64,000 bases of DNA from Macrostomum lignano (GCA_002269645.1 NIVC01003745.1:15156-79155), one strand, 5' to 3'; numbered from the stretch's first letter, positions 6,585 through 58,118 are shown. Notes: generated by a model from the letters alone, not told the origin. A program made the numbers and translations.

Positions 6585-6790
6585 TGATTGGCTTCGGGAT
6601 TCAGGATTGGCTTCAGGACTGGCTTCAGGGTTAGCTTCAGGATTCGCTTCAGGTTTGGCTTCAGGGTTAGCTTCAGGATTGGTTTCAGGATTGGCTTCAG
6701 GATTGGCTTCAGGGTTGGCTTCAGGGTTAGCTTCAGGATTGGTTTCAGGTTTGTTTTCAGGATTGGCTTCAGGGTTTTAAGGCTTCAGGG
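6585..6790. repeat. 12-bp minisatellite (GGATTGGCTTCA)
   Basis: About 16 units. It explains the ASGL/GFRI repeat ORFs. Confidence 0.9.
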
Positions 6791-31139: not shown

Positions 31140-31493
31140 GGTGGACTGTATCCCAGGCTGAAGTTCGAGAAGCAATTTTTTTTAAATATGTGAGAGGTCA
31201 GTGCGAACATATGCTGCGATAATATAAGGAAGGTGCGAAGTTCAAGCATCAGCGAGCGCTTGCTGGAAAGACGGGAGACAAGAGAGCTACAATGTACAGG
31301 CAAATGTACACAAGTGTGGTGAGCGCACTGGGCAGGCAGTCAGCTCTCTCTCTGTGCCTGCCAATCTGCCTATCCACCCAAGGCACAAGCAAAGCAATGC
31401 CGGGTCAGCTGCAGTTTGCGAATCAGACAGGGTGGCCTCGGCTAATTCGATAGAAAAGCTGCAATCTGCCCCGCCAGAAGCAGAGGAGTGGGC

Positions 31494-33495: not shown

Positions 33496-34917
33496 TCAGC
33501 CGGAAGCCACGGCGGCGCTGCTGCTGGCGGCGCTGGCAGCCAGGCTCTGGTCGTACCTCAGCTTGCTCCAGCGCTGGTTCACCGGCAGGAACGGGTCGGA
33601 CAGGACCCAGTTGTGCACTTCGTTGCCGCGCACTGTGAAGTACTTCTTGCCGATGCTGTCCCCAGCATGGCCCGCAGCAGGGTGTTCCGGCGCACCTGCT
33701 TCTGGTAGAAGCTGGCGCCACCCCGCGGATAGGCGGCGGCTGCGCGCTTGTCTACGCGGGCGTCCAGCGATTTGCGGTACGCGGAGTGCCACTGGTAGGC
33801 CATGACGGCCCACAGGCTGGTGGAGGCCGCCACCAGAGCGGACAGCAGCAAATTCCTCCCTAGGCGGGGCGAGCAAACAGGGGGCTCGTGTTAGAGAATT
33901 CAGTGTGGCGTCTGTGCGACAGGCGTCACGGCCCTGTGGAAGCTTGCGTGCCTGCGTACGTAGCTGTGTGCCTATGCGTGCTCAGGTGTGCATGTCTACG
34001 ATGACCTCTTCCTGCACCCAGCCAGAGCATGACTACAAAGCAATTGAAAACTCAGCAAATCGCTCACTGTTGGCCCGGCCTTTCAACAGGTTATCAACAA
34101 ACTGCCGACCGCTGCCCCTGGTGAACCAGAAGGTGGTGCCGATCACCCCGCTGGCTGCCAGGGTGCCGACAGCGGGCGGCACGTGGACAGCGTAGGAGTT
34201 CAGGTAGGCGAGCTCTCGTGCGAGCGCGAAGCCCAGCTCGTCCTGATTGAGCAGCAGGCAGTCGCGGTACAGCTCCCGGCCGCGCTTCGTGTTCAGCGAT
34301 AGCGGCCTGTCGTCAAAGAAGAAGACGTGCCGCTGCTCCTTGTCACTGGCCGAGTAGCCGAAGTGCTGCGGCAGGCCGAGGAAGGCCTGCGAAAAAGCAG
34401 CAATGCGAGCCTCAGCAGTACGCATCAAAGTGTCGGACTGTTTGAGTAAAACAGAAAAACTGAGCTTTCAAGGTGATTGAGAAACGAATGAGAAGTGATT
34501 CAATTGCTTTTCAGGCACCCACAGAGACGGTAAAGCCACGTGCGTCACGGCTTGGATCGGGAAGAAAAGGCAGCAGGACAACTAGGAACAATCAGGGATT
34601 CTTACCTGAAAGCCCTGGCTGGCGGACAGCCGGCCGAAGCGCACCGGGTCGACGCCGCGGCCGACGAACAGGCTGAGCTGGTCAATGCAGGCCGGCTGAA
34701 TGCCCAGCCTGTCCGCTGCGGCTCTCAGAGCGGAGCGGAGCTCCTGGGACACGGCGAGCATCTCGGAGCTGCCCTGCTGGGTGCAGGCGCAGCGGTAGGC
34801 CCGGTAGGACTGCGTCAGGTTGTGCAGCCCGTAGTATGCGGCATCTGCGGCCAGCGTGCCGGCCAGCATGGCCGACAGCAGCTTGTGGGAGCGGATCAGC
34901 GACAGCAAGTGGGACAT
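33496..34917 (-). CDS. TMEM177: TMEM177-like mitochondrial inner-membrane protein
   Basis: Exons 34917-34606, 34386-34068, 33859-33496 (one G short at 33660-63). FALARELAYL and AY.RGG.SFYQK....N..LR..LG..GKK.FT..GN match the TMEM177 pattern as recalled. Confidence 0.75.
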
Positions 34918-34934
34918 GCGGCTGCGAATGGGGA

Positions 34935-35822
34935 GGAGGGTGCAGATGAGGATTGGAGGATTGGAGAGGGTGCAGATGAGGATTGGAGAGGGTGCAGATG
35001 AGGATTGGAGAGGGTGCAGATGAGGATTGGAGAGGTTGCAGATGAGGATTGGAGAGGGTGCAGATGAGGATTGGAGAGGGTGCAGAAGAGGATTGGAGAG
35101 GGTGCAGATGAATATTGGAGAGGGTGCAGATGAGGATTTGAAAGGGTGCAGATGAGGATTGGAGAGGGTGCAGATGAGGATTGGAGAGGGTGTAGAAGAG
35201 GATTGGAGAGGGTGCAGATGAGGATTGGAGAGGGTGCAGAAGAGGATTGGAGAGGGTGCAGAAGAGGATTGGAGAGGGTGCAGATGAGGATTGGAGAGGG
35301 TGCAGAAGAGGATTGGAGAGGGTGCAGAAGAGGATTGGAGAGGGTGCAGATGAGGATTGGAGAGGGTGCAGAAGAGGATTGGAGAGGGTGCAGAAGAGGA
35401 TTGGAGAGGGTGCAGAAGAGGATTGGAGAGGGTGCAGATGAGGATTGGAGAGGGTGCAGATGAGGATTGGAGAGGGTGCAGAAGAGGATTGGAGAGGGTG
35501 CAGAAGAGGATTGGAGAGGGTGCAGAAGAGGATTGGAGAGGGTGCAGAAGAGGATTGGAGAGGGTGCAGAAGAGGATTGGAGAGGGTGCAGAAGAGGATT
35601 GGAGAGGGTGCAGATGAGGATTGGAGAGGGTGCAGATGAGGATTGGAGAGGGTGCAGAAGAGGATTGGAGAGGGTGCAGATGAGGATTGGAGAGGGTGCA
35701 GAAGAGGATTGGAGAGGGTGCAGATGAGGATTGGAGAGGGTGCAGATGAGGATTGGAGAGGGTGCAGATGAGGATTAGAGAGGGTGCAGATGAGGATTGG
35801 AGAGGGTGCAGATGAGGATTGG
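34935..35822. repeat. 22-bp minisatellite (GAGGATTGGAGAGGGTGCAGA[T/A])
   Basis: About 40 units directly upstream of the TMEM177 acceptor. On the sense strand it is pyrimidine-rich and contains CCAAT. Confidence 0.95.
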
Positions 35823-36421
35823 TGAGTGAATCGCAGTAGTTAGGTAAATTGTACAAGGCTTTACTACTAGCAGTAAGCCAAAAGCAAGACAAAGAAGCGG
35901 TGCTTTTCTGCAGCAAGGCTAATTCAGCTGAGCAGCAGTTGTATTATCAAAGCGTAGAAATTATCAATCATCAGGGCAGGTGGGCAAAGAGACTCAGTCG
36001 GATTGACAATCAGCGAGAAATCAACACTTGATATTCTACTGAAATAAAATGACTCGTATGTACAAGGGTTACAAGGACTCAATGAGTGGACATGAAACTC
36101 ATATGATAATACTTGAAACCAGAGACTATCATATGAGCATGCAGACAGACAGAACAGCTCTCAAACAGAACAATTAATCTCTTTCGACAGGATATTACAG
36201 ACGAATCTTATTAAATAGCTCATTCTGGTGACATTGGGCCATGAAGAACTAAATAGAATAAACCAGCATTCCCTGCAGAAAATGCAGAATCCGGTATTCA
36301 GCACGCAGTGCCAACACCAGCTGACAGAAGTTGGGACCCAGCAGCTCCACATTGATTGGAGACTAAACGATGTTGCAATTAAAAAGCATCGAATGGCCCA
36401 GCGTAGGCAGGGACGCAGCAA

Positions 36422-39400
36422 TCAGACAGGCCGCTGGAACTCGCTGGCCGGCTTCAGTGGCAGCAGTTCGCCAAAGTAGAAGTGCTGGATGATGGGGAAC
36501 TTTGCCAGAATCTCCGCCTTGTACATCTTCACCAGGCCGGAGTTCACCTTGTCCCAGGAGTACACCCCGCTGATGCCGTGCAGCGTGCTGGAGTGCTCCT
36601 CGAAGGGACCGGACTTCACCTGCGGTTGGAGAGGAGCAGTGAGTTAGAGGCGACTCACTGTGTGCTGCGGTGGGGATTCCCAGTGTTCTGCAGTGGGGAT
36701 TCCCAGTGTGCTGCGGTGGGGATTCCCAGTGTTCTGCAGTGGGGATTCCCAGTGTGCTGCGGTGGGGATTCCCAGTGTGCTGCGGTGGGGATTCCCAGTG
36801 TGCTGCGGTGGGGATTCCCAGTGTGCTGCGGTGGGGATTCCCAGTGTGCTGCGGTGGGGATTCCCAGTGTTCTGCAGTGGGGATTCCCAGTGTGCTGCAG
36901 TGGGGATTCCCAGTGTGCTGCAGTGGGGATTCCCAGTGTTCTGCAGTGGGGATTCCCAGTGTGCTGCGGTGGGGATTCCCAGTGTGCTGCGGTGGGGATT
37001 CCCAGTGTTCTGCAGTGGGGATTCCCAGTGTGCTGCGGTGGGGATTCCCAGTGTTCTGCAGTGGGGATTCCCAGTGTGCTGCAGTGGGGATTCCCAGTGT
37101 TCTGCAGTGGGGATTCCCAGTGTGCTGCGGTGGGGATTCCCAGTGTGCTGCGGTGGGGATTCCCAGTGTGCTGCGGTGGGGATTCCCAGTGTGCTGCGGT
37201 GGGGATTCCCAGTGTGCTGCGGTGGGGATTCCCAGTGTGCTGCGGTGGGGATTCCCAGTGTGCTGCGGTGGGGATTCCCAGTGTTCTGCAGTGGGGATTC
37301 CCAGTGTGCTGCGGTGGGGATTCCCAGTGTGCTGCGGTGGGGATTCCCAGTGTTCTGCAGTGGGGATTCCCAGTGTGCTGCGGTGGGGATTCCCAGTGTG
37401 CTGCGGTGGGGATTCCCAGTGTGCTGCGGTGGGGATTCCCAGTGTGCTGCGGTGGGGATTCCCAGTGTGCTGCGGTGGGGATTCCCAGTGTGCTGCGGTG
37501 GGGATTCCCAGTGTGCTGCGGTGGGGATTCCCAGTGTTCTGCAGTGGGGATTCCCAGTGTGCTGCAGTGGGGATTCCCAGTGTGCTGCGGTGGGGATTCC
37601 CAGTGTGCTGCGGTGGGGATTCCCAGTGTGCTGCGGTGGGGATTCCCAGTGTGCTGCAGTGGGGATTCCCAGTGTGCTGCGGTGGGGATTCCCAGTGTGC
37701 TGCGGTGGGGATTCCCAGTGTGCTGCGGTGGGGATTCCCAGTGTTCTGCAGTGGGGATTCCCAGTGTGCTGCAGTGGGGATTCCCAGTGTTCTGCAGTGG
37801 GGATTCCCAGTGTGCTGCGGTGGGGATTCCCAGTGTTCTGCAGTGGGGATCCCCAGTGTGCTGCGGTGGGGATTCCCAGTGTGCTGCAGTGGGGATTCCC
37901 AGTGTGCTGCAGTGGGGATTCCCAGCCCAGTCTTCCGCAGTGGGGATTCTCAGTGTGCTGCGGTGGGGATTCCCAGTGTGCTGCGGTGTGGATTCCCAGT
38001 GTGCTGCGGTGGAGATTCCCAGTGTTCTGCAGTGGGGATCCCCAGTGTGCTGCGGTGGGGATCCCCAGTGTTCTGCAGTGGGGATTCCCAGTGTGCTGCG
38101 GTGGGGATTCCCAGTGTGCTGCGGTGGGGATTCCCAGTGTGCTGCGGTGGGGATTCCCAGTGTGCTGCGGTGGGGATTCCCAGTGTGCTGCGGTGGGGAT
38201 TCCCAGTGTGCTGCGGTGGGGATTCCCAGTGTTCTGCAGTGGGGATTCCCAGTGTGCTGCAGTGGGGATTCCCAGTGTTCTGCAGTGGGGATTCCCAGTG
38301 TGCTGCGGTGGGGATTCCCAGTGTTCTGCAGTGGGGATCCCCAGTGTGCTGCGGTGGGGATTCCCAGTGTGCTGCAGTGGGGATTCCCAGTGTGCTGCAG
38401 TGGGGATTCCCAGCCCAGTCTTCCGCAGTGGGGATTCTCAGTGTGCTGCGGTGGGGATTCCCAGTGTGCTGCGGTGTGGATTCCCAGTGTGCTGCGGTGG
38501 AGATTCCCAGTGTTCTGCAGTGGGGATCCCCAGTGTGCTGCGGTGGGGATCCCCAGTGTTCTGCGGTGGGGATTCCCAGTGTGCTGCGGTGGGGATTCCC
38601 AGTGTGCTGCGGTGGGGATTCCCAGTGTGCTGCGGTGGGGATTCCCAGTGTGCTGCGGTGGGGATTCCCAGTGTGCTGCGGTGGGGATTCCCAGTGTGCT
38701 GCGGTGGGGATTCCCAGTGTGCTGCGGTGGGGATTCCCAGTGTTCTGCAGTGGGGATTCCCAGTGTGCTGCAGTGGGGATTCCCAGTGTTCTGCAGTGGG
38801 GATTCCCAGTGTGCTGCGGTGGGGATTCCCAGTGTTCTGCAGTGGGGATCCCCAGTGTGCTGCGGTGGGGATTCCCAGTGTGCTGCAGTGGGGATTCCCA
38901 GTGTGCTGCAGTGGGGATTCCCAGCCCAGTCTTCCGCAGTGGGGATTCTCAGTGTGCTGCGGTGGGGATTCCCAGTGTGCTGCGGTGTGGATACCCAGTG
39001 TGCTGCGGTGGAGATTCCCAGTGTTCTGCAGTGGGGATCCCCAGTGTGCTGCGGTGGGGATCCCCAGTGTTCTGCAGTGGGGATTCCCAGTGTGCTGCGG
39101 TGGGGATCCCCAGTGTTCTGCAGTGGGGATTCCCAGTGTGCTACGGTGGGGATCCCCAGTGTTCTGCAGTGGGGATTCTCAGTGCGCTGCAGTGGGGATC
39201 CCAAGTGCGCTGCAGTGTGTCACCTTGAATATGTAGTCGAGGCAGCCGAAGAAGAGGTTCTCCTTGGCCAGCTGCTCCGCCTTGCTCCTGTTGGGAATGT
39301 CGGCCGGCTGCACCTTTGGATTGCCGATCAGCTGCGCGCTGCCCCAGATGAAGGGCACGAACTGGAAGTCGTCCAAGCACCAGACTCCGTGGCTGCCAGC

Positions 39401-40460
39401 CGGCTCCATGCGGTAGGTCACCTGGCATGAGCGGGAATGCAAACCATCCGGCATGTAGAAGGTAGAAAATCCTTGCATACTAATCTAAGCCTACGATTAA
39501 ACCTTAAGTCCGAACGGGCCCTCAGAAGCAACTGAAGTCAGCACCAATCAGCCAGATTCCCAGATCCCAGCTTCTGCATCCAGTCACAGATCCCAGCTTC
39601 TGCATCCGCAACACCGCAGATCCCAGCTTCTGCATCCGCAACACCGCAGATCCCAGCTTCTGCATCCACAGTCACAGATCCCAGCTTCTGCATCCGCAAC
39701 ACCGCAGATCCCAGCTTCTGCTTCCAGTCACAGATCCCAGCTTCTGCATCCACAGTCACAGATCCCAGCTTCTGCATCCAGTCACAGATCCCAGCTTCTG
39801 CATCCGCAACGCCGCAGATCCCAGCTTCTGCATCCACAGCCGCAGATCCCAGCTTCTGCATCCACAGCCGCAGATCCCAGCCTCTGCTCCAGCATCCGCA
39901 CTCATAGCTCCCAAAACGCTCACCTGCAAACGCCGCACCAGGTCCAGGTAGCGGGCAAACACGGAGAGCGCAACAGCGGCGCAGTCGGCGGTGACGAGGA
40001 AGCCCGACTTGAACAGGCAGCAGAGGAAGGCCACAAAGGCCAGCTCATGGCCGGTGCCGTAGTCGATGCGGGTGCCGTTGCCAAACGATTCGACAAAGTA
40101 GCGGACGAGCTCGGCGCGCCGCTGCTCCGACAGATCCTGGCTGAGGCCGTCGGCCAGGCAGTCGGCCAGCAGGCCGGGCGCCTCGGACTCGAGCCGCTGC
40201 AGCCAGGTCTTGAAGGCGCGGTTGCCGAACCTGGCCGGCTGCTCTACCGGCGGAATCTCGTCAATCCAGGAGTCCAGCTTGGCCAGCAGGGAGTTGAGGC
40301 GGCCGCAGCGCTCGGACACAGAGTAGCTGTCCGGGCCGGCCTGCAGCGGCTTGCCCCGCACCGAGCTACTCACTGCCGCGATGAAGCCCAGAATCTCCTG
40401 GTAGGCCAGCGACCGCTCCCAGTCGCGCATGTTGGCTGGTGACCGCACGAGCTTCTCCAT
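36422..40460 (-). CDS. PTPA: Serine/threonine-protein phosphatase 2A activator (PTPA/PPP2R4)
   Basis: Exons 40460-39924, 39421-39224, 36619-36422. Motifs [94 protein letters not shown]. Confidence 0.95.
36658..39218. repeat. 2.56-kb 23-bp satellite (GTGTGCTGCGGTGGGGATTCCCA) with higher-order structure
   Basis: About 110 units fill PTPA intron 2. It is the source of the 849-982 aa repeat ORFs. Confidence 0.97.
39555..39890. repeat. Intronic 27-28-bp minisatellite (CAGATCCCAGCTTCTGCATCC...)
   Basis: PTPA intron 1. Confidence 0.9.
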
Positions 40461-40663
40461 GGCAGATCGGGGCGGCTGCTGCGGGCAGGGAAGTTCAGTG
40501 CCGCAATAATCAAAGGCGGGCTTGAGAGGCTGCCAGCAGAAAGCGAAATTTAAATTCGAAATTTAATTAGGCCATAATTTTATTGTTTACGTAGCGAAAA
40601 ATTCTGTCACTTTCACTTTCCAAAAATTTACCTGATCAAAATTGCGAGCTTGTAACGTTTTGG

Positions 40664-40900
40664 GTTAGTGAAGATAAAGACCTCTATGCATTAAAGGTTA
40701 GTGAAGATAAAGACCTCCATGCATTAAAGGTTAGTGAAGATAAAGACCTCCATGCATTAAAGGTTAGTGAAGATAAAGACCTCCATGCATTAAAGGTTAG
40801 TGAAGATAAAGACCTCCATGCATTAAAGGTTAGTGAAGATAAAGACCTCCATGCATTAAAGGTTAGTGAAAATAAAGACCTTAATGCATTAAAGGTTAGT
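40664..40900. repeat. 33-bp tandem repeat, about x7 (GGTTAGTGAAGATAAAGACCTCCATGCATTAAA)
   Basis: Lies in the PPIL2-PTPA spacer. Confidence 0.9.
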
Positions 40901-40996
40901 AAAATTTTGGTAAATCATCAGAGAATATTTCCTAGCTTGTCACCTACAGCTGTTTGAATAAAAAACGCAAGAATCATATGAAAAAGCATTATTATA

Positions 40997-41774
40997 CGAG
41001 GGGTGTCCCAAAAGCAGTGTCACTTCTCACCACATCTCTCGTGCTGCTGATCCAAATAACATCATTTTGCACAGATTTATAGCGGCAACTCTCTTCTTCA
41101 TATTAATTTTAACATCATTAAAAACAGACAATGGAAACAAAAGTTATGAACCAAAATGTAGCAGGAACTCGACCATAGACTTACAGCAAGTAAGCAAGTT
41201 AACAAAAATTCGAAGTGGTAGCTCACAAACAGGTAACAGGCTGCAGTGAATGCTGCAAAATGACTGCGGTGAATGACTGCGATAGACCTATGAGCCGATG
41301 AAAGTTGAGCATGAATCTCGGCTCGACTGTGCCCCGTCCCCAAAAGGGTGTATAACACACTCCTCTGAGCAACACTTGAATGCACATCCCTGACTTTTAG
41401 CGCAGCAGAAGGAGGGAACAAAAAGCAATAAAGCTGAAGCCCAGTTTGAAATATTCTGTTGCTTTAAAAGCTATATGCTTCTCCAAGTTTTTCCATAGAC
41501 ATCTCTTTGTCACAGCAGCCTAACAAAGAAGTCTGAGTGCATTCAATCAAAACTTTCGCTACTTTCCGCTATCTTGTCGAATTACTGTAAGTCTATGGTC
41601 GAGTTCCTGCCACATTTCAGTTCATAACTTTTGGTTCCATTGTCTGTTTTTAATGATATTAAAGTTAATATAAAGAAGAGAGTTGCCGCTATAAATCTGT
41701 GCAAAATGATGTTATTTGGATCAGCAGAACGAGAGATACAGTGAAAAGCAACACCACTTTTGGGGCACCCCTCC
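40997..41774 (-). mobile_element. Non-autonomous mariner-type DNA transposon (778 bp, about 190-bp TIRs)
   Basis: 40997-41186 is an approximately 90% identical inverted copy of 41585-41774. Ends are TA|CGAGGGGTGTCCCAAAAG and CCCCTCC|TA. The internal minus-strand remnant QRSVLYTLLGTGHSRAEIHAQL resembles a mariner transposase N-terminal HTH. Confidence 0.85.
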
Positions 41775-41939
41775 TAGCAACAATATTATATATTTATTGC
41801 GTGCTTGCTCAGTTTAAGCTTGAGGCAAAAATTTCGCACAGCACAAATACAGCTGGAGCAGAGGAGTGAGTTGGTCAGGGCCACGCAGCATCAAGAGCAA
41901 GCAAATCAGAGTTTCTTAGAAACGCAGAACTGGTGGCCA

Positions 41940-44900
41940 TCACCAGCCGCTGAAGTCGCTCAGCTGGCTCGTGTCCTTCACAGAGCGGGGCTTCTTGGGC
42001 GGCCCCGAATCCGGCTGAGCCTGCGGGACTTGCCGCTTGCCCTGCTGCTGCTTCTGCAGCTGGCGCAGGTTGAGGAACTGCCCGACGCCGGTGCCGAAGG
42101 CCTTCTTCGGCTGCGAGGTCACCGCGGGAGTCGCCGAGGTGGTGGCGGCGGACTGCGAGGAAGCGGGAGCGGCTGCAGAGGCGATAGCGGCCCGCTCAGA
42201 GGCCAGAGCTGCGTCCACCTGCTCGAAGGGGTCCACGAACACCTGCGAATATCGGCGTGGTGCGGGGGGCGGGGTGAGGAGACTCCAGCCACAACCGCCT
42301 TTACTTACTGATTTCACAGTTTGCGCCCTCAGAACAGATTCAGCAAAAATATCACAAGTAACCAAAATAAAGCTGGCATTTCACTGAGCTCTGCAGCCAA
42401 GAATACAAGTACATCCGCACTCAGTGACCTGAGCTCTGCAGCCAGGAATACAAGTACATCCGCACTCAGTGACCCGAGCTCTGCAGCCAAGAATACAAGT
42501 ACATCCGCACTCACTGACCTGAGCTCTGCAGCCAAGAATACAAGTACATCCGCACTCACTGACCTGAGCTCTGCAGCCAAGAATACAAATACATCCGCAC
42601 TCAGTGACCCGAGCTCTGCAGCCAAGAATACAAGTACATCCGCACTCAGTGACCTGAGCTCTGCAGCCAAGAATACAAGTACATCCGCACTCAGTGACCC
42701 GAGCTCTGCAGCCAAGAATACAAGTACATCCGCACTCAGTGACCTGAGCTCTGCAGCCAAGAATACAAGTACATCCGCACTCAGTGACCCGAGCTCTGCA
42801 GCCAAGAATACAAGTACATCCGCACTCACTGACCCGAGCTCTGCAGCCAAGAATACAAGTACATCCGCACTCAGTGACCTGAGCTCTGCAGCCAAGAATA
42901 CAAGTACATCCGCACTCAGTGACCTGAGCTCTGCAGCCAAGAATACAAGTACATCCGCACTCAGTGACCCGAGCTCTGCAGCCAAGAATACAAGTACATC
43001 CGCACTCACTGACCCGAGCTCTGCAGCCAAGAATACAAGTACATCCGCACTCAGTGACCTGAGCTCTGCAGCCAAGAATATAAGTACATCCGCACTCAGT
43101 GACCTGAGCTCTGCAGCCAAGAATACAAGTACATCCGCACTCAGTGACCTGAGCTCTGCAGCCAAGAATACAAGTACATCCGCACTCAGTGACCTGAGCT
43201 CTGCAGCCAAGAATACAAGTACATCCGCACTCAGTGACCTGATTTCTGCAGCCAAGAATACAAGTACATCCGCACTCAGTGACCTGAGCTCTGCAGCCAA
43301 GAATACAAGTACATCCGCACTCAGTGACCTTTGCTCTGCAGCAAAGAATAAAAGTACATCCGCAATGTAATTAATTAACAATTTCATTCTGACGTGTTGG
43401 GGGTTGTCGCTGACTATTGACTGGCTAGATATTAAACTGACTCACTTTGTGCCCTACTTACCCTGCATAGCGTCCACCCCACTCATGCGTACATCAATGC
43501 GCACATAGCGTACTTTCAAATCTAACTTTTATCAATAACTCAAATATCGTTTTATACCACTACGTATTTAAATAACTGAATCTAGCTTTTCTTTGTTGTA
43601 ATATTTACTCAGCAAATATATCAGTTCGCTGCATTATTGTTCAAATTAAACAAGCCTTGTCTGCGTCGCGTCACATCCTGCAGCCAAATCACTGAACTCT
43701 GCAGCCAAGAATAAAAGTACATCCGCACTCAGTGACTCGAACTCTGCATCCAGGAATAAAAGTACATCCGCACTCAGTGACTGAGCTCTTCAGCCAAGAA
43801 TAAAAGCTTACCTGGGCACTGAGAATTCGCACGTCCTCAATCGGCCGGTCATTCTTGTCAACCTCAACGGTCTCGATTCGGTCCAGCGTGTCCGAGCCGC
43901 CGACCAGTCGGCCGAACACGGTGTGCCGCCTGTCCAGATGCCGACAGGACCTGTAGGTGATGAAGAACTGGCTGCGGTTCGAGTTCGGGCCCGAGTTCGC
44001 CATGCTCAGCACGCCGCGGCTGTCGTGATTGAGAAACGGGCGCAGCTCGTCGCGGATGGAGCCGCCCCAGGCGCTCTCACCGCCCGAGCCCGTGCCGGTG
44101 GGGTCGCCGCCCTGCAGCACGAAATGGCGCACGGATCTGGGAGTGACAGTCCGGGAGTGACGGAGTGGCATGAATTTCAAGTCGTGACGCTTTTAGAATT
44201 AATCTGATCGAATCTTCACCAGATAAGTTTTTATCCGGGTGTCCAAGACTGAGATTTGAGCTCGCGATAGGCCAGAGCCGCTGAGCCAGGACCTCAGCCA
44301 CGGACACACGGATTCAAAGTTCTATCAAATGATCAGTACGCCGCACTTTTGCGCGCACACTCGAGATCTGCTTCAAATTCATTTTTTTCAACTCGTTAGT
44401 AGGCCGGGCTATTTTTAATATGCGACTGACACAATAATTCATCTTATTAAAGTCTTCACAATAAATGAAGCCCGCAAGTCTCACCTATGAAACACGGTGC
44501 CATTGTAGTAACCCTTGCGGCACAGAAGGATGAAATTCTCGCAAGTCTTCGGACAGTGCTCGCAGTCCAGCTCCAGGTTCAGCTGGCCGAAGTTGGTCTC
44601 CAGGCGGACGTAGCCTTTTGTTTTGACCCGGGGTACCTCACCTGGTCGTCATCGAGCCTGGCCGCTTCCAGGTGGGTCACTCGGTCCATTGTGGTGGAGG
44701 TGAAGCTAGCCGCCGCTGCGCCAGTTGAGTAATGAGCTGCATTGATGGTGTCATCTGCCTGCGGGAGGTCGGATTGAACTCACTGCTCAGCATGTCGCAC
44801 TCAGCCCCTTGAACTCTGTATCCCATCTAAATCCCATCTGCTTGACCTCACATCCCCGTCCCACCGTCGCCTCACCTTCCTCCGCAGGCCGGCGCCCTCG

Positions 44901-46318
44901 GCAACATCGGGGCCGCGGAGCGCCTCCCGGTTGGCTTTGGAGTTGGCGGCCGCATCGGCTCGAATTTTGGCCACAGAAGCCAGGGCCTCGCGGGCCTCCT
45001 GAGACGCCACCCGAGCCGACTGGCCGCCGCTGCCGTCGTCCAGCTTGACTCGGTTCTTGACGTGGTAGAAGTTGGTGATGTCCCGCTTGTCAAAGTTCAT
45101 GGGATCCTGGATGGTGATGATGTCGGAGCGGGCGAACGGCTTGCCGTCCAGCAGGTCCTGCCAGTTTCCCGGCTTCACGTTCAGCTGGTCGACCGCGTCC
45201 TGGCGACGGAGCAGAAATCCAGGCTTTGTGCTTATGGTGCGGTGAGGGCCAGCCTAGCAGCAACTTATTCAGCTTTTCTTGCCAATCTGCCATGTGTCCA
45301 ACCCAAACTGTCATGTGTCCATCACAATCTGCCATCTGTCTATACCAATCTGCCATTTGTCCATCTCAATCTGCCATCTGTCCAGCAATATCTGCCATCT
45401 GTCCATCCCAATCTGCCATCTGTCTATACCAATCTGCCATGTGTCCATCCCAATCTGCCATGTGTCCAGCCCAATCTGCCATCTGTCCAGCAATATCTGC
45501 CATCTGTCCATCCCAATCTGCCATCTGTCTATACCAATCTGCCATGTGTCCATCCCAATCTGCCATGTGTCCATCCTAATCTGCCATCTGTCTATCCCAA
45601 TCTGCCATGTGTCCAGCCCAATCTGCCATCTGTCCATCCCAATCTGCCATCTGTCCAGCCCAATCTGCCATCTGTCCAGCCATATCTGCCATCTGTCCAT
45701 CCCAATCTGCCATCTGTCTATACCAATCTGCCATCTGTCCATGACAATCTTCCATCTGTTTAGATTCATCTTTCAAATATCTTTCACGATATTTAACGTC
45801 CAATTCTATTCCACATCACTCTAAACCCAACTGTCGCCTCTATCCCAAATATTATTAACTGCCGCCAGCCAATATTCCCAATGTCATTGACTACCGCCTG
45901 TATCCTGAACTGCGGTCATCGCCACAAGACTCACCTTAGAGTAAACATTGCCGGAGGTCGTTATGGCAACGATATGGCTGCTGGGCGTGAAGACCTTGTA
46001 GGTGACGGGACAGAAGTAGCGGCCCTCCGCGTTCTTGTGGAAGTGCAGCTCCACCAGGTCGCGCCGGGTCATCTTCTCGCCCGTGACGGGGCTGACGCCG
46101 AACTGCTTGAGAAAGTCCTGAATGTTCTTCAGGTCGAACACCACGCCATCTCGCGTGCACAGCGGCGTCGTGAACGGCTGCAGGCTGAGGGCGCAGAAGT
46201 CAAACGGCAGGCGCTTCAGCACGGTCTGGGCGGGCCGGCCGGTCTTGCCGCCGAAGTCCTCCGCCCACTCGGTGGGTCGGATGTGCAAAGTGTCCTTGGA
46301 GTGCTGCTTCTTGCCCAT
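41940..46318 (-). CDS. PPIL2: RING-type/U-box E3 ubiquitin ligase cyclophilin PPIL2 (Cyp60)
   Basis: Exons 46318-45935, 45199-44876, 44758-44485 (one base short at 44630-33), 44136-43812, 42242-41940. Motifs [103 protein letters not shown] on the minus strand at 41798-41793. Confidence 0.95.
42384..43366. repeat. 45-bp minisatellite, about x22, in PPIL2 intron 4 (further degenerate copies at 43693-43805)
   Basis: The unit length is a multiple of 3, which produces spurious 349/352-aa ORFs on both strands. Confidence 0.95.
45285..45750. repeat. Intronic 21-bp minisatellite (CCAATCTGCCATCTGTCCATC)
   Basis: PPIL2 intron 1. Confidence 0.9.
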
Positions 46319-46349
46319 TGCTGCTGCGGGGTGGCAAGGCTGGCTGTAA

Positions 46350-46560
46350 GCTGGCCAATCAGAGCGGGCTGTGACTGACTGGCCAATCAGAGTGGGGTGT
46401 GACTGGCTGGCCGAGCAGAGTGGGGTCTGACTGGCTGGCCAATCAGAGTGGAATGGGACTGGCTGACCAATCAAAGTGGAGTGGGACTGGCTGGCGGGGT
46501 GTGACTGGCTGGCCAATCAGAGTGGGGTCTGACTGGCTGGCCAATTAGAGCGGGGTCGGA
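46350..46560. repeat. 28-bp repeat carrying GGCCAATCAG immediately upstream of PPIL2
   Basis: About 7 units of CTGGCTGGCCAATCAGAGTGGGGTGTGA-like sequence. Confidence 0.85.
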
Positions 46561-47234
46561 CTGACCCCACCACAATCGGAGTGAGGGCAGGTCAATAAAA
46601 GTTGGCGGTCTAAATGTTCCACCAGATTTTTTAAAATAAAAACAAGCCCCGACGTGCTGTGGTACAAGGAAAAAATTTATTGACAAATATTAAATATGTA
46701 TATTGCTCAAGCGGACACAGACCCGTACAAAGCGAGTTGCCATTGAAAAAAACTTTAAAGCCGCATAAAACACGATGCCTTAAACGGAAAACTACGGTAT
46801 ATATGAATCAGTTGGCAAAAAGCAGGTATAGCGATCAGATTACTGAATTAATATTTGTAATTGCTGAGTACAGCTGGCTTATTGCAACAGAAAAAACACA
46901 ACTGCGCGTCAGTAACTGAAGCATTGGAAATATACAGTACTAATTACTGGCTTAACCCAGACTTCAGTAAGCAGTCATGATTTATGGGAGTTCAATAAAC
47001 ATAAAATTCAAAACCAATCACAAAGATCTCTATGGGGCATCGAAAACCTCATCTGCATTTGGTGCGGATGCACAATTCGATTCGCCAAGATCCCCTACTT
47101 GTTCACAGCGGTGTTGAGCACACTGCTCAGGAAGGTCTCACAGCTGATGCAGATCCCCGAACCCAGATCCCCTACTTGTTCACAGCGGTGTTGAGCACAC
47201 TGCTCAGGAAGGTCTCACAGCTGATGCAGATCCC

Positions 47235-49050
<1,816 letters not shown>

Positions 49051-49924
49051 TACAACAACACAAACAATGGCCCGAAAGCAGGCAACCAAGAGGCGAAGCT
49101 GAGATGCTGGAGACAGCAAAATCGCGCCATTTATTGCATTATTGACAACAATTAGATAAAGAGAGCCAGAGGCTACACAGTGCTTTCAGAGTTATTCTTA
49201 TTGCTAGGAGAAATTACAGCCACCAAAATTAATTATCCTATTTATTAATGACTAACAATAATCATAATTATCAACTATCAAGAACTGAGGAAAGACAAAA
49301 CAGACAAGATTTTCAACGCTGCTACAAAATTAGAACAGAAGTGTCACTAGTCGATGGAAACAGGGCTACGGACCAACACAGTAGAATATAAGTAACTGGC
49401 TGGCGGATACAAGCATGCCCGGCACTGAACGGGTGCTCATACTCATAATGCCAAATAAAATTTCACTAAAATTCACTAAAATTAAGAACTATAAGTTAAA
49501 AACAATGGGAAAAATTCATGCTACACCTGATAATTTTTATGTTAACATTAAAAAACCACAATGAAGACCTGATTAACAGAGTAATTTAAAACAACAGACA
49601 GTAAATAAAGAACCAAAATTACATCAGCCTCATCATCAAGAATCTGTGACGCCACAACAGTTATAATAAGAACAAAGCAAACGGGCAGTGCGAAAAGAAA
49701 AAAGCGGTGACAGCAAAGCATAAAGCAAAGTAAGCTTTGATTAGCAAAACAAGCTGCAATTTAAAAACAGCTGACTACTAACGGTCTTAATAGGCTACTA
49801 GTACAGCAGGGCACGCCAGTCTACACTGGATTTAGTAGAATAAACAGAGGCAAATAGTAACACCAGAAGTCAGTGATGCCAGCAGCTTGATCAAGGCTGG
49901 TGGGAATAAACACACAGGCACACA

Positions 49925-51095
49925 GGCAATAAATACTAAATAGCGCTAACTAGATGACGAGCCCACTCCCCTATTCAGTAAATAAATACTAAATAGCGCT
50001 AGCTATGATAGATGGCCAGGGTGAGCGCCACTCCCCTATTCAGTAAATAAATACTAAATAGCGCTAGCTATGATAGATGGCCAGGGTGAGCGCCACTCCC
50101 CTATTCAGTAAATAAATACTAAATAGCGCTAGCTATGATAGATGGCCAGGGTGAGCGCCACTCCCCTATTCAGTAAATAAATACTAAATAGCGCTAGCTA
50201 TGATAGATGGCCAGGGTGAGCGCCACTCCCCTATTCAGTAAATAAATACTAAATAGCGCTAGCTATGATAGATGGCCAGGGTGAGCGCCACTCCCCTATT
50301 CAGTAAATAAATACTAAATAGCGCTAGCTATGATAGATGGCCAGGGTGAGCGCCACTCCCCTATTCAGTAAATAAATACTAAATAGCGCTAGCTATGATA
50401 GATGGACAGGGTGAGCGCCACTCCCCTATTCAGTAAATAAATACTAAATAGCGCTAGCTATGATAGATGGCCAGGGTGAGCGCCACTCCCCTATTCAGTA
50501 AATACTAAATAGCGCTAACTATGATAGATGGCCAGGGTGAGCGCCACTCCCCTATTCAGTAAATACTAAAAATAGCACTAACTATGATAGATGGCCAGGG
50601 TGAGCCACTCCCCTATTCAGTAAATACTAAAAATAGCACTAACTATGATAGATGGCCAGGGTGAGCCCACTCCCCTATTCAGTAAACACTAAATAGCACT
50701 AACTATGATAGATGGCCAGGGTGAGCCCACTCCCCTATTCAGTAAACTAAATAGCACTAACTATGATAGATGGCCAGGGTGAGCCACTCCCCTATTCAGT
50801 AAATACTAAATAGCACTAACTATGATAGATGGCCAGGGTGAGCCCACTCCCCTATTCAGTAAACTAAATAGCACTAACTATGATAGATGGCCAGGGTGAG
50901 CCACTCCCCTATTCAGTAAATACTAAATAGCACTAACTATGATAGATGGCCAGGGTGAGCCCACTCCCCTATTCAGTAAACTAAATAGCACTAACTATGA
51001 TAGATGGCCAGGGTGAGCCCACTCCCCTATTCAGTAAACTAAATAGCACTAACTATGATAGATGGCCAGGGTGAGCCCACTCCCCTATTCAGTAA
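49925..51095. repeat. 58-65-bp minisatellite, about x18, with a polar divergence gradient
   Basis: Core ATGATAGATGGCCAGGGTGAGC..ACTCCCCTATTCAGTAAA. Left units carry AAATAAATAC and GCGCTAGCT; right units are shorter and carry GCACTAACT. Confidence 0.93.
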
Positions 51096-51343
51096 AAATA
51101 TGAAAATTGCTACTCGGAGGAAAAAATCATTAATTTAACTATCAAAAATTGAATATTGAATATAATGAATGAAAACTCAGACATAAGGTTCCATGAATTC
51201 TTTGGAACAAGCATTTTGCAGGACTAACAATTTAGAATGGACTGGAAGCGACAGACGGCTTCCAATCCATAGGATTCAGGTGTCCATGGGAATAACTGCA
51301 CAGGAACTCGAACACGAAACCATCCCGGGGCCAACACAGGCCC

Positions 51344-53224
51344 TCAGCCCCACACCATGAGGGCGGACTCGCCCGAGGCGGTGATCCGCCGGGCCATCAG
51401 GCGGCAGGCGTGGATGGAGAAGTCCGGATCGCCCAGTCGGCGGGCCAGGGCCGGGCAGCAGGGAGCCGCATCTGGCGGCAGCAGCTTCCGCTCCCATGGC
51501 AGCTCGAAGGGGTTCCGGCTGAGATCGGTGGCCGGAAGAAATGAGAGAGCGGCAGAAGCTGGCACCGGAGGCCCAGCGCTAAGGGGAGCAGCCAAGTGGT
51601 CGGCAGAGCTGAGCTCAGCAAAGCAGGAGTTCACCCGCCTGATGGAAGTCGCTGGAGGGCCGCAGGCGGCAGCAGAAGCAGCAGCAGGCAGCAGAACTTT
51701 GCGTTTCTTGCCGCCATGCTTGCCGCGATACACAATTCTGGCGGTCTTGAACACGGGCCTGGGGGTCCAGCACAGGTAAAGTGGCGGTCTGGGCGCCACG
51801 GCCTCAACGGGAGTAGCGGAGCCGCAATCGGTAGGCGAGTCTACCATTGACTGGGGGCTGCTGCTGCTGCTACTGGTGCCCGAGTGGCTATCGTTGCCAT
51901 TGGTAACGCAGGCCGCCATGGGGCTGGGCGTTGTGGCTCGTGAGATTCCATTGCTTGCCCGTTCAACCTTGGCTGCGTGAAATCGCTGCACGTGACGCTT
52001 CGGCGATGAGGTGCCGGAGAAAGCTTCGTCGCAATTATCGCATTCCATTCGCTTTCTTTTTGCAGTATTTTCTGACTCAGGCTTGCGAGACTTCAAACAA
52101 GGCAACTGAGGATTGGCATTTTTCTTACAAGCAGCTATGGGGACAGGAGCAGACTGCTTTTTCCCGGCCTTGCCTGAGCCTGCGTTTGACTTTCTTCTAA
52201 TAAACTCGTCAAATTCGATTTCCACTTTACTAGCGGACTGGCTGGTTGCATCTCCGCTGAACTGCTCTGCCTCCGCTGTGTTTGATCGCTGGCGCCTGTC
52301 GGACTGGAATTTCTTTGAAACGTGGGCGCGCAATTTTTTTGCTTGACTACCAGCGCCGGCTTTCGCCTTCTTGCCAATAAAGAGTTTAACTTTCTCTCCG
52401 ATCTCGGGCTTGTCTTTATGATGTCTGCGGTTGTGGCGATACAGTGACGACTTGGTAGCGAAGGAGCGCCTGCACAATACGCAGCTCGCCGAGCCGGGCA
52501 CATTAACCTCGCCGTTGGATTTCTCAGAGGCAGATTTGACAGCCGATTGTGTCTCTGACGGAGCAGAGGCCGGAACACTGCTTGTCTCGGAGCACACTGG
52601 AACTGTGGCGGATGCAGTTCTCTGAAAACTTTTGCTACCTTCAGTCTTGCTCTGGCTGGCAGCGCCAACGCAGCCTCGCTGAAGGTGCCGAAGCAGAACA
52701 ACTTGGTGGCGAAACGACTTCGAGCAATGGCGGCAAGATGAAGGCTCCGGCTTGCCATTTCTGTTAGCGCAGCTCACCTTACTGTCTTTCACCTCTCTTA
52801 CTGAAGGTAAGCCATTCAGTTGCCTCCTGCTTGGCAGTTTTGCAGACAGCACTTTGGCTGCTCCGTTTGCTGCAGAATTCTTTTTCTCACCATGAGTATT
52901 TTTACGCGGCTTCGGGCCCCGCTTCTTCGCTGGACTTGACTGGAAGACAGCCTGCCTCCCAGCATCTCCCTCATCTTTGCCGCTACTGTTGGAAATACTT
53001 CCAGCAGGGACCTGCACACCGTTTACGAGCCCAGCAGATGGAGCTTTCAGCTTCTTGGTTCTCGCCGCAACCTTTTGCTGCCTGCAGTGACAGACCATGT
53101 GAGTGCTGAGGCGCTGGCTGCTGAGAAACACCTTGCGGCACAGGCGGCAACTGGGACTGCGGTTTGCCGTTTTCGTCTCAGGTCGCCCACCAGCACCCGC
53201 TCTTAGCTGCCTTCGATCTTTCAT
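51344..53224 (-). CDS. C2H2 zinc-finger protein with four dispersed fingers, basic and Ser-rich
   Basis: Uninterrupted ORF 51344-53296 with the first in-frame ATG at 53224. Fingers CRLC..F...RL.THMVCH, CRHC..F...VL.RHLQRGC, CVLC..F...SL.RHNRRH, CDNC..F....KRHVQRFH. A splice acceptor TATTTCAG lies at 53278-77. Confidence 0.75.
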   Translation of the reverse strand: MKDRRQLRAGAGGRPETKTANRSPSCRLCRKVFLSSQRLSTHMVCHCRQQKVAARTKKLKAPSAGLVNGVQVPAGSISNSSGKDEGDAGRQAVFQSSPAKKRGPKPRKNTHGEKKNSAANGAAKVLSAKLPSRRQLNGLPSVREVKDSKVSCANRNGKPEPSSCRHCSKSFRHQVVLLRHLQRGCVGAASQSKTEGSKSFQRTASATVPVCSETSSVPASAPSETQSAVKSASEKSNGEVNVPGSASCVLCRRSFATKSSLYRHNRRHHKDKPEIGEKVKLFIGKKAKAGAGSQAKKLRAHVSKKFQSDRRQRSNTAEAEQFSGDATSQSASKVEIEFDEFIRRKSNAGSGKAGKKQSAPVPIAACKKNANPQLPCLKSRKPESENTAKRKRMECDNCDEAFSGTSSPKRHVQRFHAAKVERASNGISRATTPSPMAACVTNGNDSHSGTSSSSSSPQSMVDSPTDCGSATPVEAVAPRPPLYLCWTPRPVFKTARIVYRGKHGGKKRKVLLPAAASAAACGPPATSIRRVNSCFAELSSADHLAAPLSAGPPVPASAALSFLPATDLSRNPFELPWERKLLPPDAAPCCPALARRLGDPDFSIHACRLMARRITASGESALMVWG

Positions 53225-53706
53225 ATCTAGATTAAGAAGACTCAAATCGGAATCAGCATACCACAGTGCTGTGCACCTGAAATACACATTAGTCATTATG
53301 AGCTTACTTGGGCAATTTCCAAATGTATTTAAAATTTCAAAATCTATTTTAAGCTTTATAAATATAAAAAAACGGTTACTTCTAGTCTAAGGAGGCCTTG
53401 GTACATAAGCTAAACAAACATGGGAAGCTAAACAAGACGAGACTAGGCAAATAGGCACGGCACCTAAGTTTGACAAATAAAGAGACAATTTGCGGCTTTC
53501 AATTGTGAACAAACAAATGCAACTTTGATGCTACTGTGTATTTCCATATAACCAGAGTTGAACTCGCACACAAAAGAGCCGATCTAACGGAACCAGTGAT
53601 GAACAAGGAAAGCAATAGAAGAATAGAATTAGCAAAACCAAAACTGAAACCAAGCTGACCATGGAAACTCAATCCACGCACAGGTCAGATTGGCAGAATC
53701 GGCAGC

Positions 53707-55320
53707 TCAGGTGTATAAGTAGGCGGAGGAGCCGTTGGCGCCTGGCTGGCGGCACAACAGCCGCATGACGCGGTCTGAGTTGGGCGGCCAGGCGGGCCGG
53801 CAGTAGCGCAGCGGCTGGCAGGCGAGCGCAGGCCGGAAGGCGGCCATGGCGGCCGGGTCAGGCGGCAGCAGCCGGTGCGGCTCGCCGTCACAGTCGGCCT
53901 CGGCCACGAAGGCAACAAAGGCGGCGGCCGGCACGCGGCGCATCTGGCAGACGCTGAGCAGCTGGGCGGGCAGGCCGGTCAGCAGGTTCGGTGGCTCCAG
54001 TTGCTGCACGGCGTCACCTGCCGCCCTGTGGGACAATTTTGTATTGAGGCCTATTGCCTGAGTTTGTATTGAGTAACAAAGACCTGTCAATCACTCACTT
54101 GCCCTGTCCGAGCATGGCGCTGGACCGCAGGCAGCGCAGCAGGGGGCCAACCAGAGAGGAGGCCGGCTCAGCCGACTGGAAGCTCGTCAGCGGCTGCGTG
54201 CCCAGCACCGCCAGATCCAGCGATTCGACGTCCAGCACAGACAGCAGCAGCTCCACGAACTCGTGACAGTCGGCAGGAGGAACTGGGGCGGCGGCGTGGC
54301 AGACCAGCACCTGCGTGCGATGGGGAAACTGCGTCACAGGCTGCACTGATCAGCTTCATCATCCACACCAATCAGCTCCATCACCCACACCAATCAGCTC
54401 CATCACCCACACCAATCAGCTCCATCACCCACACCAATCAGCTCCATCACCCACACCAATCAGCTCCATCACCCACACCAATCAGCTCCATCACCCACAC
54501 CAATCAGCTCCATCACCCACACCAATCAGCTCCATCACCCACACCAATCAGCTCCATCACCCACACCAATCAGCTCCATCACCCACACCAATCAGCTCCA
54601 TCACCCACACCAATCAGCTTCATCACCCACACCAATCAGCTTCATCACCCACACCAATCAGCTTCATCACCCACACCAATCAGCTTCATCACCCACACCA
54701 ATCAGCTTCATCACCCACACCAATCAGCTTCATCACCCACACCAATCAGCTCCATCACCCACACCAATCAGCTTCATCACCCACACCAATCAGCTTCATC
54801 ACCCACACCAATCAGCATGAGTACGAGTGGTCGTTTGCGTACAGTATTGGCGCACTTTTATGTGTGTCTCAGCGCTGGTTGTGTGACATAGTGTGTCGCC
54901 AAAGGCGTTGCACCCTCCCACCAACCTGCGGGTTGCACTTCAGCCGATACAAGAAGCAGCCAAAGTCCCCCAGCGCAGTCTGCCCCAGGCTGTTGGCCAG
55001 CCCAGCCTCCGGGAAGCCACAGCTGATGAGGCCCAGAATCTCAGCGTCATCGCCCAGAACGCAGGCGGTTAGGAAGCCGCAGGCGGCGGGCCCGACGCCA
55101 ACCAGCAGGGTGCTGCAGTCGAGGACCCGCCGGTCCCCAGCCGCCAGCTGCTGCGAGCAGCGGGGCTGAGGCGCATCGCGCAGCTCCGGACATCGGAGGC
55201 CTTCAAACGGCCACTGTCGCCTCCTTGATCCTCGCCGCCGTCCCAGTCGGAGTCCTCGGAGTCGTCAACGGCGCGGGAGAACTCAGGCAGCCGCTTGGGA
55301 AACGGGCCGTCGGCGGCCAT
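53707..55320 (-). CDS. PSMG1: Proteasome assembly chaperone 1 (PSMG1/PAC1)
   Basis: Exons 55320-54926 (one base short at 55162-65), 54310-54099, 54025-53707. Motifs FSRAVDDSEDS, LLVGVG..ACGFL, FLYRLKCNPQVLVC, LEPPNLLTGLPAQLLSVCQ...PA, and a C-terminal YLYT* resembling the conserved PSMG1 terminus. Confidence 0.8.
54360..54815. repeat. Intronic 23-bp minisatellite, about x20 (CCAATCAGCTCCATCACCCACAC)
   Basis: PSMG1 intron 1. Confidence 0.93.
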
Positions 55321-56224
55321 GGAGAAGCAAGAATTTGTGGCAACTGCGGCTTGGCGAGCAAAACTGAAGCGGTTTGTTCAGTGCAACTGCCATCAGCTCT
55401 GGTGTGAGATAAAGTCAAACGAATATTAATTGTACAGCAGTCTGTAAATTAACTTTGACAGCAGTCTGTAAGCTAATTTTGACAGCAGTTTGTAAACTAA
55501 TCTTTATAGCACTCAGTAATAATTTTTACTAAAATAAATATAGGTTATAATTTTTAGCATATACAAATGGAAGGATTAAACTTTTTTTAAAATAAAAACC
55601 TCCTTACATAGTTACATTGTCATTGCTTCTTTTATGATTCATAGATGACCCATCCCCCCCCTAGTCCATTATGCTAAGCATGTAGCAGCCTAATTAGCAT
55701 TAACTTAGTATGCTAGTGTGCCAAGTATGCCAGACAAAATGCACTAGTGCACCAGGTGTGCCAGCAGTGAGTCTAAAATCTCTTAGCTGCTGACTCCAGT
55801 ATTGATATAAACATTTATATAAATTTAATCCATCCCAGTCATTTTGTCCTCTGTCCAGTGCGTGCTCCCAATGCTTGAACGATTTCTTTATGCTATTTAA
55901 ACTACCGTTTTGGGCTCTATCATTTTCATGCTCTTCCATCTCCTCTGTTTTCTTCTCCTTTTATGTTAAATTTGCATTGTTTTCGATTGACTACCAAGCC
56001 TATTTAGCCCAACCGCAAAGTTTATTAATTTTAGTTTAATTTCTTTATTGTAACTTAGCACCCCGGTATAGCTGCGAACCAATCTCTGTTGACAAATTAA
56101 TTACCTTAACCCACCTGCTACTCATCATCAGACACCTAGCCTTTTTTTGCTTGAATAATAATATTAATTACCATAATAAGTTATGCCAATTAATTTTTTG
56201 TTGATCATTAAGCCATAGCCCATC

Positions 56225-57997: not shown

Positions 57998-58118
57998 TGA
58001 GTATATTAATGATCAATTTAATAAAGTACAGAACCCTGGTTCTGTACCAGAAATATCTTTTTCAAAAATCACAAAGTATAGTATTCAAAACTTTCATTTA
58101 CCTTGTACTACAAGTCAA

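Follow-up and report, generated by a model that had tools for sequence, protein, structure and literature searches.

Six genes follow one another on the minus strand of a stretch of the Macrostomum lignano genome (GCA_002269645.1, NIVC01003745.1:15156-79155; 64,000 nucleotides, hereafter the window), each with a candidate splice acceptor close to its start codon. The question that this locus raises is whether these genes are transcribed together and separated by spliced leader (SL) trans-splicing, and whether as one unit or as several. An initial annotation of the sequence had proposed a single polycistronic unit of all six. We find that the run probably consists of polycistronic units resolved by the SL, at the least two trios of genes, and we put the probability of this reading at roughly three in four. 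The core of the earlier proposal fits the biology of the species and the annotation of the scaffold, but a single six-gene transcript is not shown and the genes carry two different name prefixes.

The window 56309-34579, the 21,731-nt GenBank stretch that was compared, is base-for-base identical to NIVC01003745.1 of assembly GCA_002269645.1 (Mlig_3_7), and an M. lignano protein shares 99% identity with PTPA exon 1. By scaffold identity and published work, the host therefore has SL RNA and trans-splicing (PMC8629364). The species uses a single 35-nt SL, CGGTCTCTTACTGCGAAGACTCAATTTATTGCATG, with the 3' end ...TTGCATG, and both its SL RNA and its SL RNA gene have been described; 30% of the genes are trans-spliced and 15% lie within operons (PMC8629364). 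Operons were delimited at less than 1 kb between genes after adjustment for repeats, and between trans-spliced neighbours the adjusted distances have their mode at about 100 bp; 75% of the operons contain two genes, 18% three, and the largest nine (PMC8629364). Nearly 7% of the transcripts that were assembled are precursors bearing several trans-splice sites, called transcriptional units, which were cut into genes at experimentally mapped SL and polyadenylation (poly(A)) signals, and a gene-name prefix stands for one transcriptional-unit cluster (PMC5730564).

The genes PSMG1, ZnF, PDCD6, PPIL2, PTPA and TMEM177 were recovered on the minus strand, in the order given in the initial annotation. 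In the GenBank gene calls they are consecutive, as operon adjacency demands, with no opposite-strand gene inside the run. PSMG1 (proteasome assembly chaperone 1, PAC1) extends from an ATG at 55320 to a stop at 53707 (exons 55320-54926, 54310-54099 and 54025-53707). Its frame-corrected model belongs to the Pfam PAC1 family (PF16094; 100.7 bits against a gathering cutoff of 28.4, E = 1e-28), and the GenBank entry, PAA49991.1 (BOX15_Mlig030201g2), is a truncated model. The C2H2 zinc finger (ZnF) gene is a single coding exon (ATG 53224, stop 51344). It is followed by a PDCD6/ALG-2-like penta-EF-hand gene (ATG 48314; exons 48314-48107 and 47587-47235, with EF-hands; PAA49989.1, BOX15_Mlig030201g5 or g6). 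PPIL2 (ATG 46318, stop 41940; five exons; PAA49988.1, BOX15_Mlig030335g2) encodes a U-box-like and a cyclophilin region (Rtf2/zf-NOSIP and cyclophilin). Its matches to PF04641/PF15906 are weak, that to PF00160 has E = 7.5e-33, and its 52-59% identity to metazoan proteins named PPIL2 agrees with membership of that family. PTPA, the PP2A activator (ATG 40460; exons 40460-39924, 39421-39224 and 36619-36422; PAA49987.1, BOX15_Mlig030335g3), belongs to PF03095 (E = 8e-52 for exon 1 and 6e-27 for exon 2) and has a 2.5-kb minisatellite with a 23-nt unit in intron 2. The last gene (ATG 34917; exons 34917-34606, 34386-34068 and 33859-33496; PAA49986.1, BOX15_Mlig030335g4) encodes a protein with no match in Pfam or PDB and a collinear BLASTP match (27% identity, E = 1e-13) to human TMEM177. 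From this match only we call it TMEM177-like, and the name is the weakest of the six.

Enrichment in proteostasis genes, which had also been proposed, is not supported: it is a reading of five names and an uncharacterised zinc finger, and what has been published is only that the trans-spliced genes of M. lignano tend in general to be conserved ones (PMC8629364).

Single-nucleotide frameshifts relative to the sister copies were seen near 55153 (PSMG1), 44633 (PPIL2), 33660 (TMEM177) and 29905 (an acid phosphatase gene further downstream); three or more of these lie within short runs of C or G. The GenBank proteins are shortened by them to 111 aa for PAC1, 292 aa for PPIL2, 296 aa for TMEM177 and 317 aa for the phosphatase. 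The sister copy has a different frameshift, in PSMG1 exon 2. These are probably uncorrected long-read errors; alternatively, they may reflect decaying duplicate copies. The homopolymer frameshifts of this scaffold, which truncate annotated proteins, may be worth knowing for users of the M. lignano genome.

The published gene names, which we recovered by exact-sequence look-up, divide the run in two. On this scaffold the prefix Mlig030201 is carried by PSMG1 (g2) and PDCD6 (g5/g6), with no name shown for ZnF, and Mlig030335 by PPIL2 (g2), PTPA (g3) and TMEM177 (g4). On the sister scaffold NIVC01000581.1, PSMG1 is Mlig030201g7, ZnF is BOX15_Mlig030201g8 and PDCD6 is Mlig030201g5/6, while PPIL2, PTPA and TMEM177 are Mlig013084g1, g2 and g3. 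The order of the six genes is kept in all three genome copies, the third being NIVC01001098.1. From the methods text we infer that a shared prefix with consecutive numbers marks genes cut from one precursor-like transcriptional unit. On this reading the published data already hold two three-gene units, PSMG1-ZnF-PDCD6 and PPIL2-PTPA-TMEM177. The identifiers of the six genes were not found in the supplements of the papers searched.

In addition to the prefixes that span each trio, a transcript from a congener joins PPIL2 to PTPA. This contig (L001, Logan SRR28338165) comes from a related species in which PTPA is 91% identical, and joins the last coding exon of PPIL2 to the PTPA leader. The PPIL2 exon runs to ...SDFS, without a stop codon or 3' untranslated region (UTR), and enters the leader 12-15 nt before the ATG, through an acceptor homologous to the PTPA sites at -15/-18. 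The homologous point in the window is a GT donor that overlaps the PPIL2 stop (ctg/gtga, 41940-41943, minus strand; the slash marks the splice point here and below). Such a junction requires both genes to lie on one RNA. In parasitic flatworms, rare cis-splicing into polycistron-resolving acceptors likewise gives chimeric gene models (PMC12582326). One further Logan contig, L005, with a 67%-identical PDCD6, was set aside; its transcript is not from Macrostomum, and it lacks the SL.

Several older gene models of the ML2 set are fusions. P0247 (UniRef/ML2; 48314-41940) fuses PDCD6 with PPIL2, and P0256 (40529-28450) fuses PTPA, TMEM177, the antisense of a GNAT gene and an acid phosphatase; in both there are GT donors at or beside the upstream stop codon. 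P0261 (57098-53707) joins an antisense retroelement to PSMG1, and P0125, from another locus, joins an N-terminal region with a TRAP-delta (PF05404) match to a PDCD6 paralogue. Fused models of this kind are typical mis-annotations at operons. We rejected P0247 and P0256 as RNA evidence of co-transcription, because part of P0256 is a translation of antisense GNAT sequence.

A footprint of the SL itself was found in the third genome copy, NIVC01001098.1 (L004). At positions 7041-7047 this copy has TTGCATG in place of the TCTCCAG found at the homologous window positions 48323-48317, just before the PDCD6 start codon. The copy reads tttttgcatg/ccATGG and the window ttttctccag/ccATGG, so that the heptamer, identical to the SL 3' end, stops precisely at the predicted junction. 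It is the sole occurrence of TTGCATG on the gene strand in 23 kb. Mlig_3_7 was polished by Pilon using both RNA-seq and genomic reads, and on the simplest account bases from SL-bearing reads entered the sequence in this way at the PDCD6 trans-splice site; alternatively, the heptamer may be a genuine SL relic in the DNA. Under artefact and relic alike, the footprint indicates that mature PDCD6 mRNA would begin SL/CCAUGG. Any SL footprints left in Mlig_3_7 by RNA-seq polishing could be mined or corrected, and the 3' part of the SL, e.g. ...CTCAATTTATTGCATG, can serve as a read tag. Other matches to SL suffixes in the window, such as TATTGCATG ending at 28984, were rejected, being at chance frequency and away from exon starts. 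An SL RNA gene was not found in the window, either by an Rfam gathering scan or when the 35-nt SL was sought with as many as three mismatches allowed.

The acceptors themselves lie close to the start codons. PDCD6 has ttctccag/ccATG (first exon base 48316), PPIL2 ccgcag/cagcaATG (46323) and TMEM177 cattcgcag/ccgcATG (34921). The ZnF acceptor tatttcag/ (first exon base 53276) is 52 nt before the ATG, and PTPA has ggcag/ at -69 (first base 40529). All acceptor strings quoted in the initial annotation are present at the distances given there. A YAG that follows at least six pyrimidines in eight and ends within 6 nt of an ATG, a criterion set after the data had been seen, occurs at four of the six gene starts and at 54 of 2036 window ATGs (2.65%; binomial P = 7e-6). 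The choice among sites fared less well. PTPA apparently also uses sites at -18 (first base 40478) and -15 (cagcag/, 40475), and for PSMG1 the candidate cttcag/ at -43 (first base 55363) is better than gccgcag/ at -23 (55343). The sites at PTPA -15 and PSMG1 -43 had been overlooked, as had PPIL2 ttacag/ at -25 (first base 46343) and ZnF ctag/ at -2.

Published gene ends were then compared with these sites. In the annotation, the coding sequences (CDSs) of the downstream genes lack a genomic 5'UTR; each is 5'-partial or opens with the ATG, and begins 0-25 nt past the predicted acceptor. The annotated 5' end falls exactly at PTPA -15 in two copies (here as the 5'-partial CDS start at 40475), an older ML2 model, P0001, starts exactly at the PTPA -69 acceptor, and in L004 the annotated ZnF 5' end is exactly at a tttcag/ acceptor. 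On this scaffold the 5'-partial ZnF CDS in GenBank starts at 53272, and the TMEM177 5' end is annotated at 34896 here and at 34899 in the sister copy. Since the annotated ends of ZnF (here), PPIL2 and TMEM177 are off the AG by up to 25 nt, they confirm the acceptors approximately. PSMG1 may itself be trans-spliced, because it has a good acceptor at -43 and its annotated CDS in the sister copy begins 10 nt after cttcag/. For PPIL2, a further candidate, caag/ at 46309, coincides with the annotated CDS start; trans-splicing at this site, with the AUG of the SL as in-frame initiator, was rejected as a firm claim, since the annotated TMEM177 and ZnF ends are likewise imprecise. SL addition at each individual site in this genome copy is a prediction from sequence.

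The distances between the genes also resemble those of operons once repeats are taken into account. Raw spacers are 0.4-3 kb. Measured from stop to acceptor with tandem repeats (TRF arrays only) subtracted, they are 430, 1238, 550, 1172 and 629 nt in gene order from PSMG1 to TMEM177, and the PPIL2-PTPA value of 1172 nt falls to about 390 nt when a 779-nt miniature inverted-repeat transposable element (MITE) is subtracted as well. A second measure took each spacer as the distance between the nearest poly(A)-type hexamer and the acceptor that follows, minus the TRF arrays and the MITE, with poly(A) sites predicted from the hexamers. The unique sequence that remains is about 30-60 nt for PSMG1-ZnF (variant hexamers only), about 170 nt for ZnF-PDCD6 (AATAAA at 49135), about 120-140 nt for PDCD6-PPIL2, about 250 nt for PPIL2-PTPA (MITE also removed) and about 70 nt for PTPA-TMEM177 (variant hexamers only). 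From hexamer to acceptor all spacers are within the repeat-adjusted operon distance of less than 1000 bp, and ZnF-PDCD6 exceeds it, at 1238 nt, if measured from the stop. With repeats subtracted the spacers shrink to about 30-250 nt from hexamer to acceptor and 430-1238 nt from stop to acceptor. The 430 nt between the PSMG1 stop and the ZnF acceptor and the PDCD6 AATAAA at 46681-46676, both given in the initial annotation, were confirmed; the AATAAA is about 330 nt from the PPIL2 acceptor. Repeat-collapsed spacers are the published signature of M. lignano operons, here with predicted poly(A) sites.

The window has a GC content of about 55% and contains dozens of minisatellites, many of them within the introns and spacers of the six genes. 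In the ZnF-PDCD6 spacer (48393-51096) there are arrays at 49959-51096, 48817-49055 and 48393-48804, with minus-strand AATAAA at 49246 and 49135. An AT-rich MITE-like or foldback insertion of 779 nt (40995-41773), with terminal inverted repeats of about 192 bp that are 90.6% identical, directly follows the PPIL2 AATAAA (41798, minus strand) and inflates the PPIL2-PTPA spacer; it is absent from L004 and at least partly present in copy L002. The PTPA-TMEM177 spacer is filled by a 22-nt minisatellite of about 40 copies (34956-35826), which ends 34 nt upstream of the TMEM177 acceptor. The PDCD6-PPIL2 spacer contains a 214-nt tandem array (46350-46563, minus strand) of five to seven units carrying CTGATTGGCCAG, 12-240 nt upstream of the PPIL2 acceptors and conserved in a paralogous copy. 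We take CTGATTGGCCAG to match the NF-Y/CCAAT-box consensus. The array could be a candidate internal promoter or a neutral intercistronic repeat, and the presence of CCAAT-type minisatellites in introns as well (54349-54816 and 45282-45759) weighs against the promoter reading.

Across the window, a CCAAT/ATTGG pentamer occurs in the unit of six of about 37 minisatellite families, where about two are expected (46350-46563, 54349-54816, 34956-35826, 45282-45759, 15208-15619 and 6600-6773). Some of these families lie just upstream of genes and others in introns, and two have the longer form CTGATTGG.

We propose that RNA polymerase II would start upstream of PSMG1, in the AT-rich region at about 55.4-55.7 kb, and then read through several cistrons. 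Each upstream mRNA would be cleaved and polyadenylated, and each downstream mRNA would receive the 35-nt SL at an AG acceptor, from a few to about 70 nt before its ATG. The spacers would look long only through the minisatellites and the MITE that have accumulated between poly(A) signal and next acceptor. In an alternative form of this proposal, a promoter within the CCAAT-box array would start a second unit at PPIL2. Both the extent of the primary transcript and the poly(A) sites are predicted.

Several observations weigh against polycistronic transcription of the run. The PDCD6/PPIL2 spacer is bridged by a shared prefix in none of the three genome copies, and it is there that the CCAAT array, a possible promoter, lies. 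StringTie-type assemblies can also merge neighbours by read-through, and the junction between PPIL2 and PTPA comes from another species. A more distant congener (L003, Logan SRR30276804) has a 150-nt unspliced PTPA leader with no SL. PSMG1 and PTPA are not followed by a canonical AATAAA. The annotated 5' ends of ZnF (here 2-4 nt past its acceptor) and TMEM177 (20-25 nt past) are not at an AG.

As to the L003 contig itself, its positions 1-19 are left over from an Illumina adapter (acgtgtgctcttccgatct), and of its leader no more than a short block, AATTTCGAGTTTAAA, can be aligned with the M. lignano sequence that precedes the -69 acceptor.

The strongest rival reading is one primary transcript over all six genes, and maybe a seventh, all resolved by the SL, with a repeat that hindered transcript assembly as the cause of the break in the annotation. 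We consider this possible, at somewhat less than even odds. The distance from the PDCD6 AATAAA to the PPIL2 acceptor drops to its 120-140 nt simply by removal of the 214-nt array, well inside the operon criterion, and published units are indeed split where spacers are repeat-rich (PMC8629364). In P0247, PDCD6 and PPIL2 are linked by a splice from a donor that overlaps the PDCD6 stop (aa/gtag) to the ttacag/ acceptor. However, the break is at the same place in all three copies, and the ML2 fused models are unreliable, as the translated GNAT antisense of P0256 illustrates; apart from P0247, PDCD6-PPIL2 is the one junction with no RNA-level bridge. The candidate seventh gene, which encodes a histidine acid phosphatase (31157-28450, minus strand), follows TMEM177 after 2.3 kb. 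Its cttcag/ acceptor is 18 nt upstream of the start codon, and in copy B the gene shares the prefix Mlig015018 with PTPA, but on this scaffold its prefix is a different one (Mlig003826), and a convergent GNAT acetyltransferase gene (31485-32658, plus strand), the first opposite-strand gene after TMEM177, lies between the two.

We think it unlikely that the genes are independent units, each with its own promoter and a short outron replaced by the SL (monocistronic trans-splicing), the multi-gene units being read-through artefacts. About 60% of the trans-spliced genes of M. lignano are outside operons (PMC8629364), the raw spacers are kilobase-sized in part, arrays that contain CCAAT are found immediately upstream of both PPIL2 and TMEM177, and the unspliced leader upstream of PTPA in L003 would fit a separate start. 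Against this, the congener junction needs PPIL2 and PTPA on one RNA, in two copies these two and TMEM177 bear a single prefix with consecutive numbers, the unique sequence from hexamer to acceptor is only tens to about 250 nt, and the two intronic CCAAT-type arrays speak against a promoter role for such repeats.

It is more doubtful still that there is one transcript of six or seven genes in which donors at or near upstream stops compete with the SL, and that the resulting chimeric mRNAs or in-frame fusions (PDCD6-PPIL2, PTPA-TMEM177) are regulated products and not noise. Candidate competing GT donors are PDCD6 aa/gtag at 47238, PPIL2 ctg/gtga at 41943 and PTPA gcga/gttcc at 36440.

The idea that the acceptors belong to ordinary cis-spliced 5'UTR introns, with unannotated non-coding first exons and no SL, is scarcely credible: acceptors alone cannot tell cis from trans, and flatworm cis- and trans-splicing share sites (PMC12582326), but none of the three copies has an annotated upstream exon, the CDSs are 5'-partial at the acceptors, the SL heptamer stands exactly at the PDCD6 junction in L004, and in this species 30% of the genes, with a preference for conserved ones, are trans-spliced.

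Upstream of PSMG1 there is an AT-rich stretch, then opposite-strand retroelement open reading frames (ORFs), and no annotated gene within 8 kb. The retroelement remnant at 56200-58500 (plus strand) contains a gag zinc knuckle, a DTGS motif like that of aspartic proteases, and ORFs resembling reverse transcriptase, as judged by eye, and no Pfam match at E <= 0.01. A second remnant, at 7060-8760 (minus strand), has integrase/RNase H-like ORFs. At 25754-24710 (minus strand), ORFs with zf-UBP and a UCH cysteine box indicate a ubiquitin-specific protease, whose 5' exons may be unannotated; the GenBank CDS downstream starts only at 23777.

SL trans-splicing, operons, repeat-inflated spacers and unit-based names for these very genes are already published for M. 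lignano. The gain for biology is small, as both the phenomenon and the annotation of the six-gene locus are public. For method, the locus shows that acceptors adjoining start codons, read from raw sequence alone, can correctly flag flatworm SL operons.

We compared the cluster to known systems of polycistronic transcription. With the operons of C. elegans (SL1/SL2) it would share a polycistronic precursor, 3'-end formation coupled to downstream trans-splicing and a housekeeping bias, and the typical intercistronic distance of about 100 nt and size of 2-8 genes there are a further likeness. In contrast to C. elegans, M. lignano has one SL and no SL2 (PMC8629364), so that on the literature the cluster is not an SL2 operon, and its spacers carry kilobase-scale minisatellite and transposon insertions. 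One SL type also resolves polycistrons in parasitic flatworms and Ciona (PMC12582326). The operon threshold for parasitic flatworms is <=300 bp without repeat correction, by which the cluster would fail on raw distances, and their rare cis-splicing into a downstream trans-acceptor gives chimeras like L001, P0247 and P0256 (PMC12582326). The closest system is the set of M. lignano SL operons (Wudarski et al. 2017, PMC5730564; Ustyantsev & Berezikov 2021, PMC8629364), from the same organism and assembly, with which the cluster shares same-strand neighbours, repeat-inflated spacers, CAG-type acceptors and conserved housekeeping genes. Only two acceptors of the cluster, ZnF tttcag and PDCD6 ctccag, match the top published motif, [T/C]TNCAG, exactly (PMC8629364), and six genes, if they form one unit, would be in the upper tail of the published sizes. 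Nothing categorical differs, and the cluster is very probably a member of this set.

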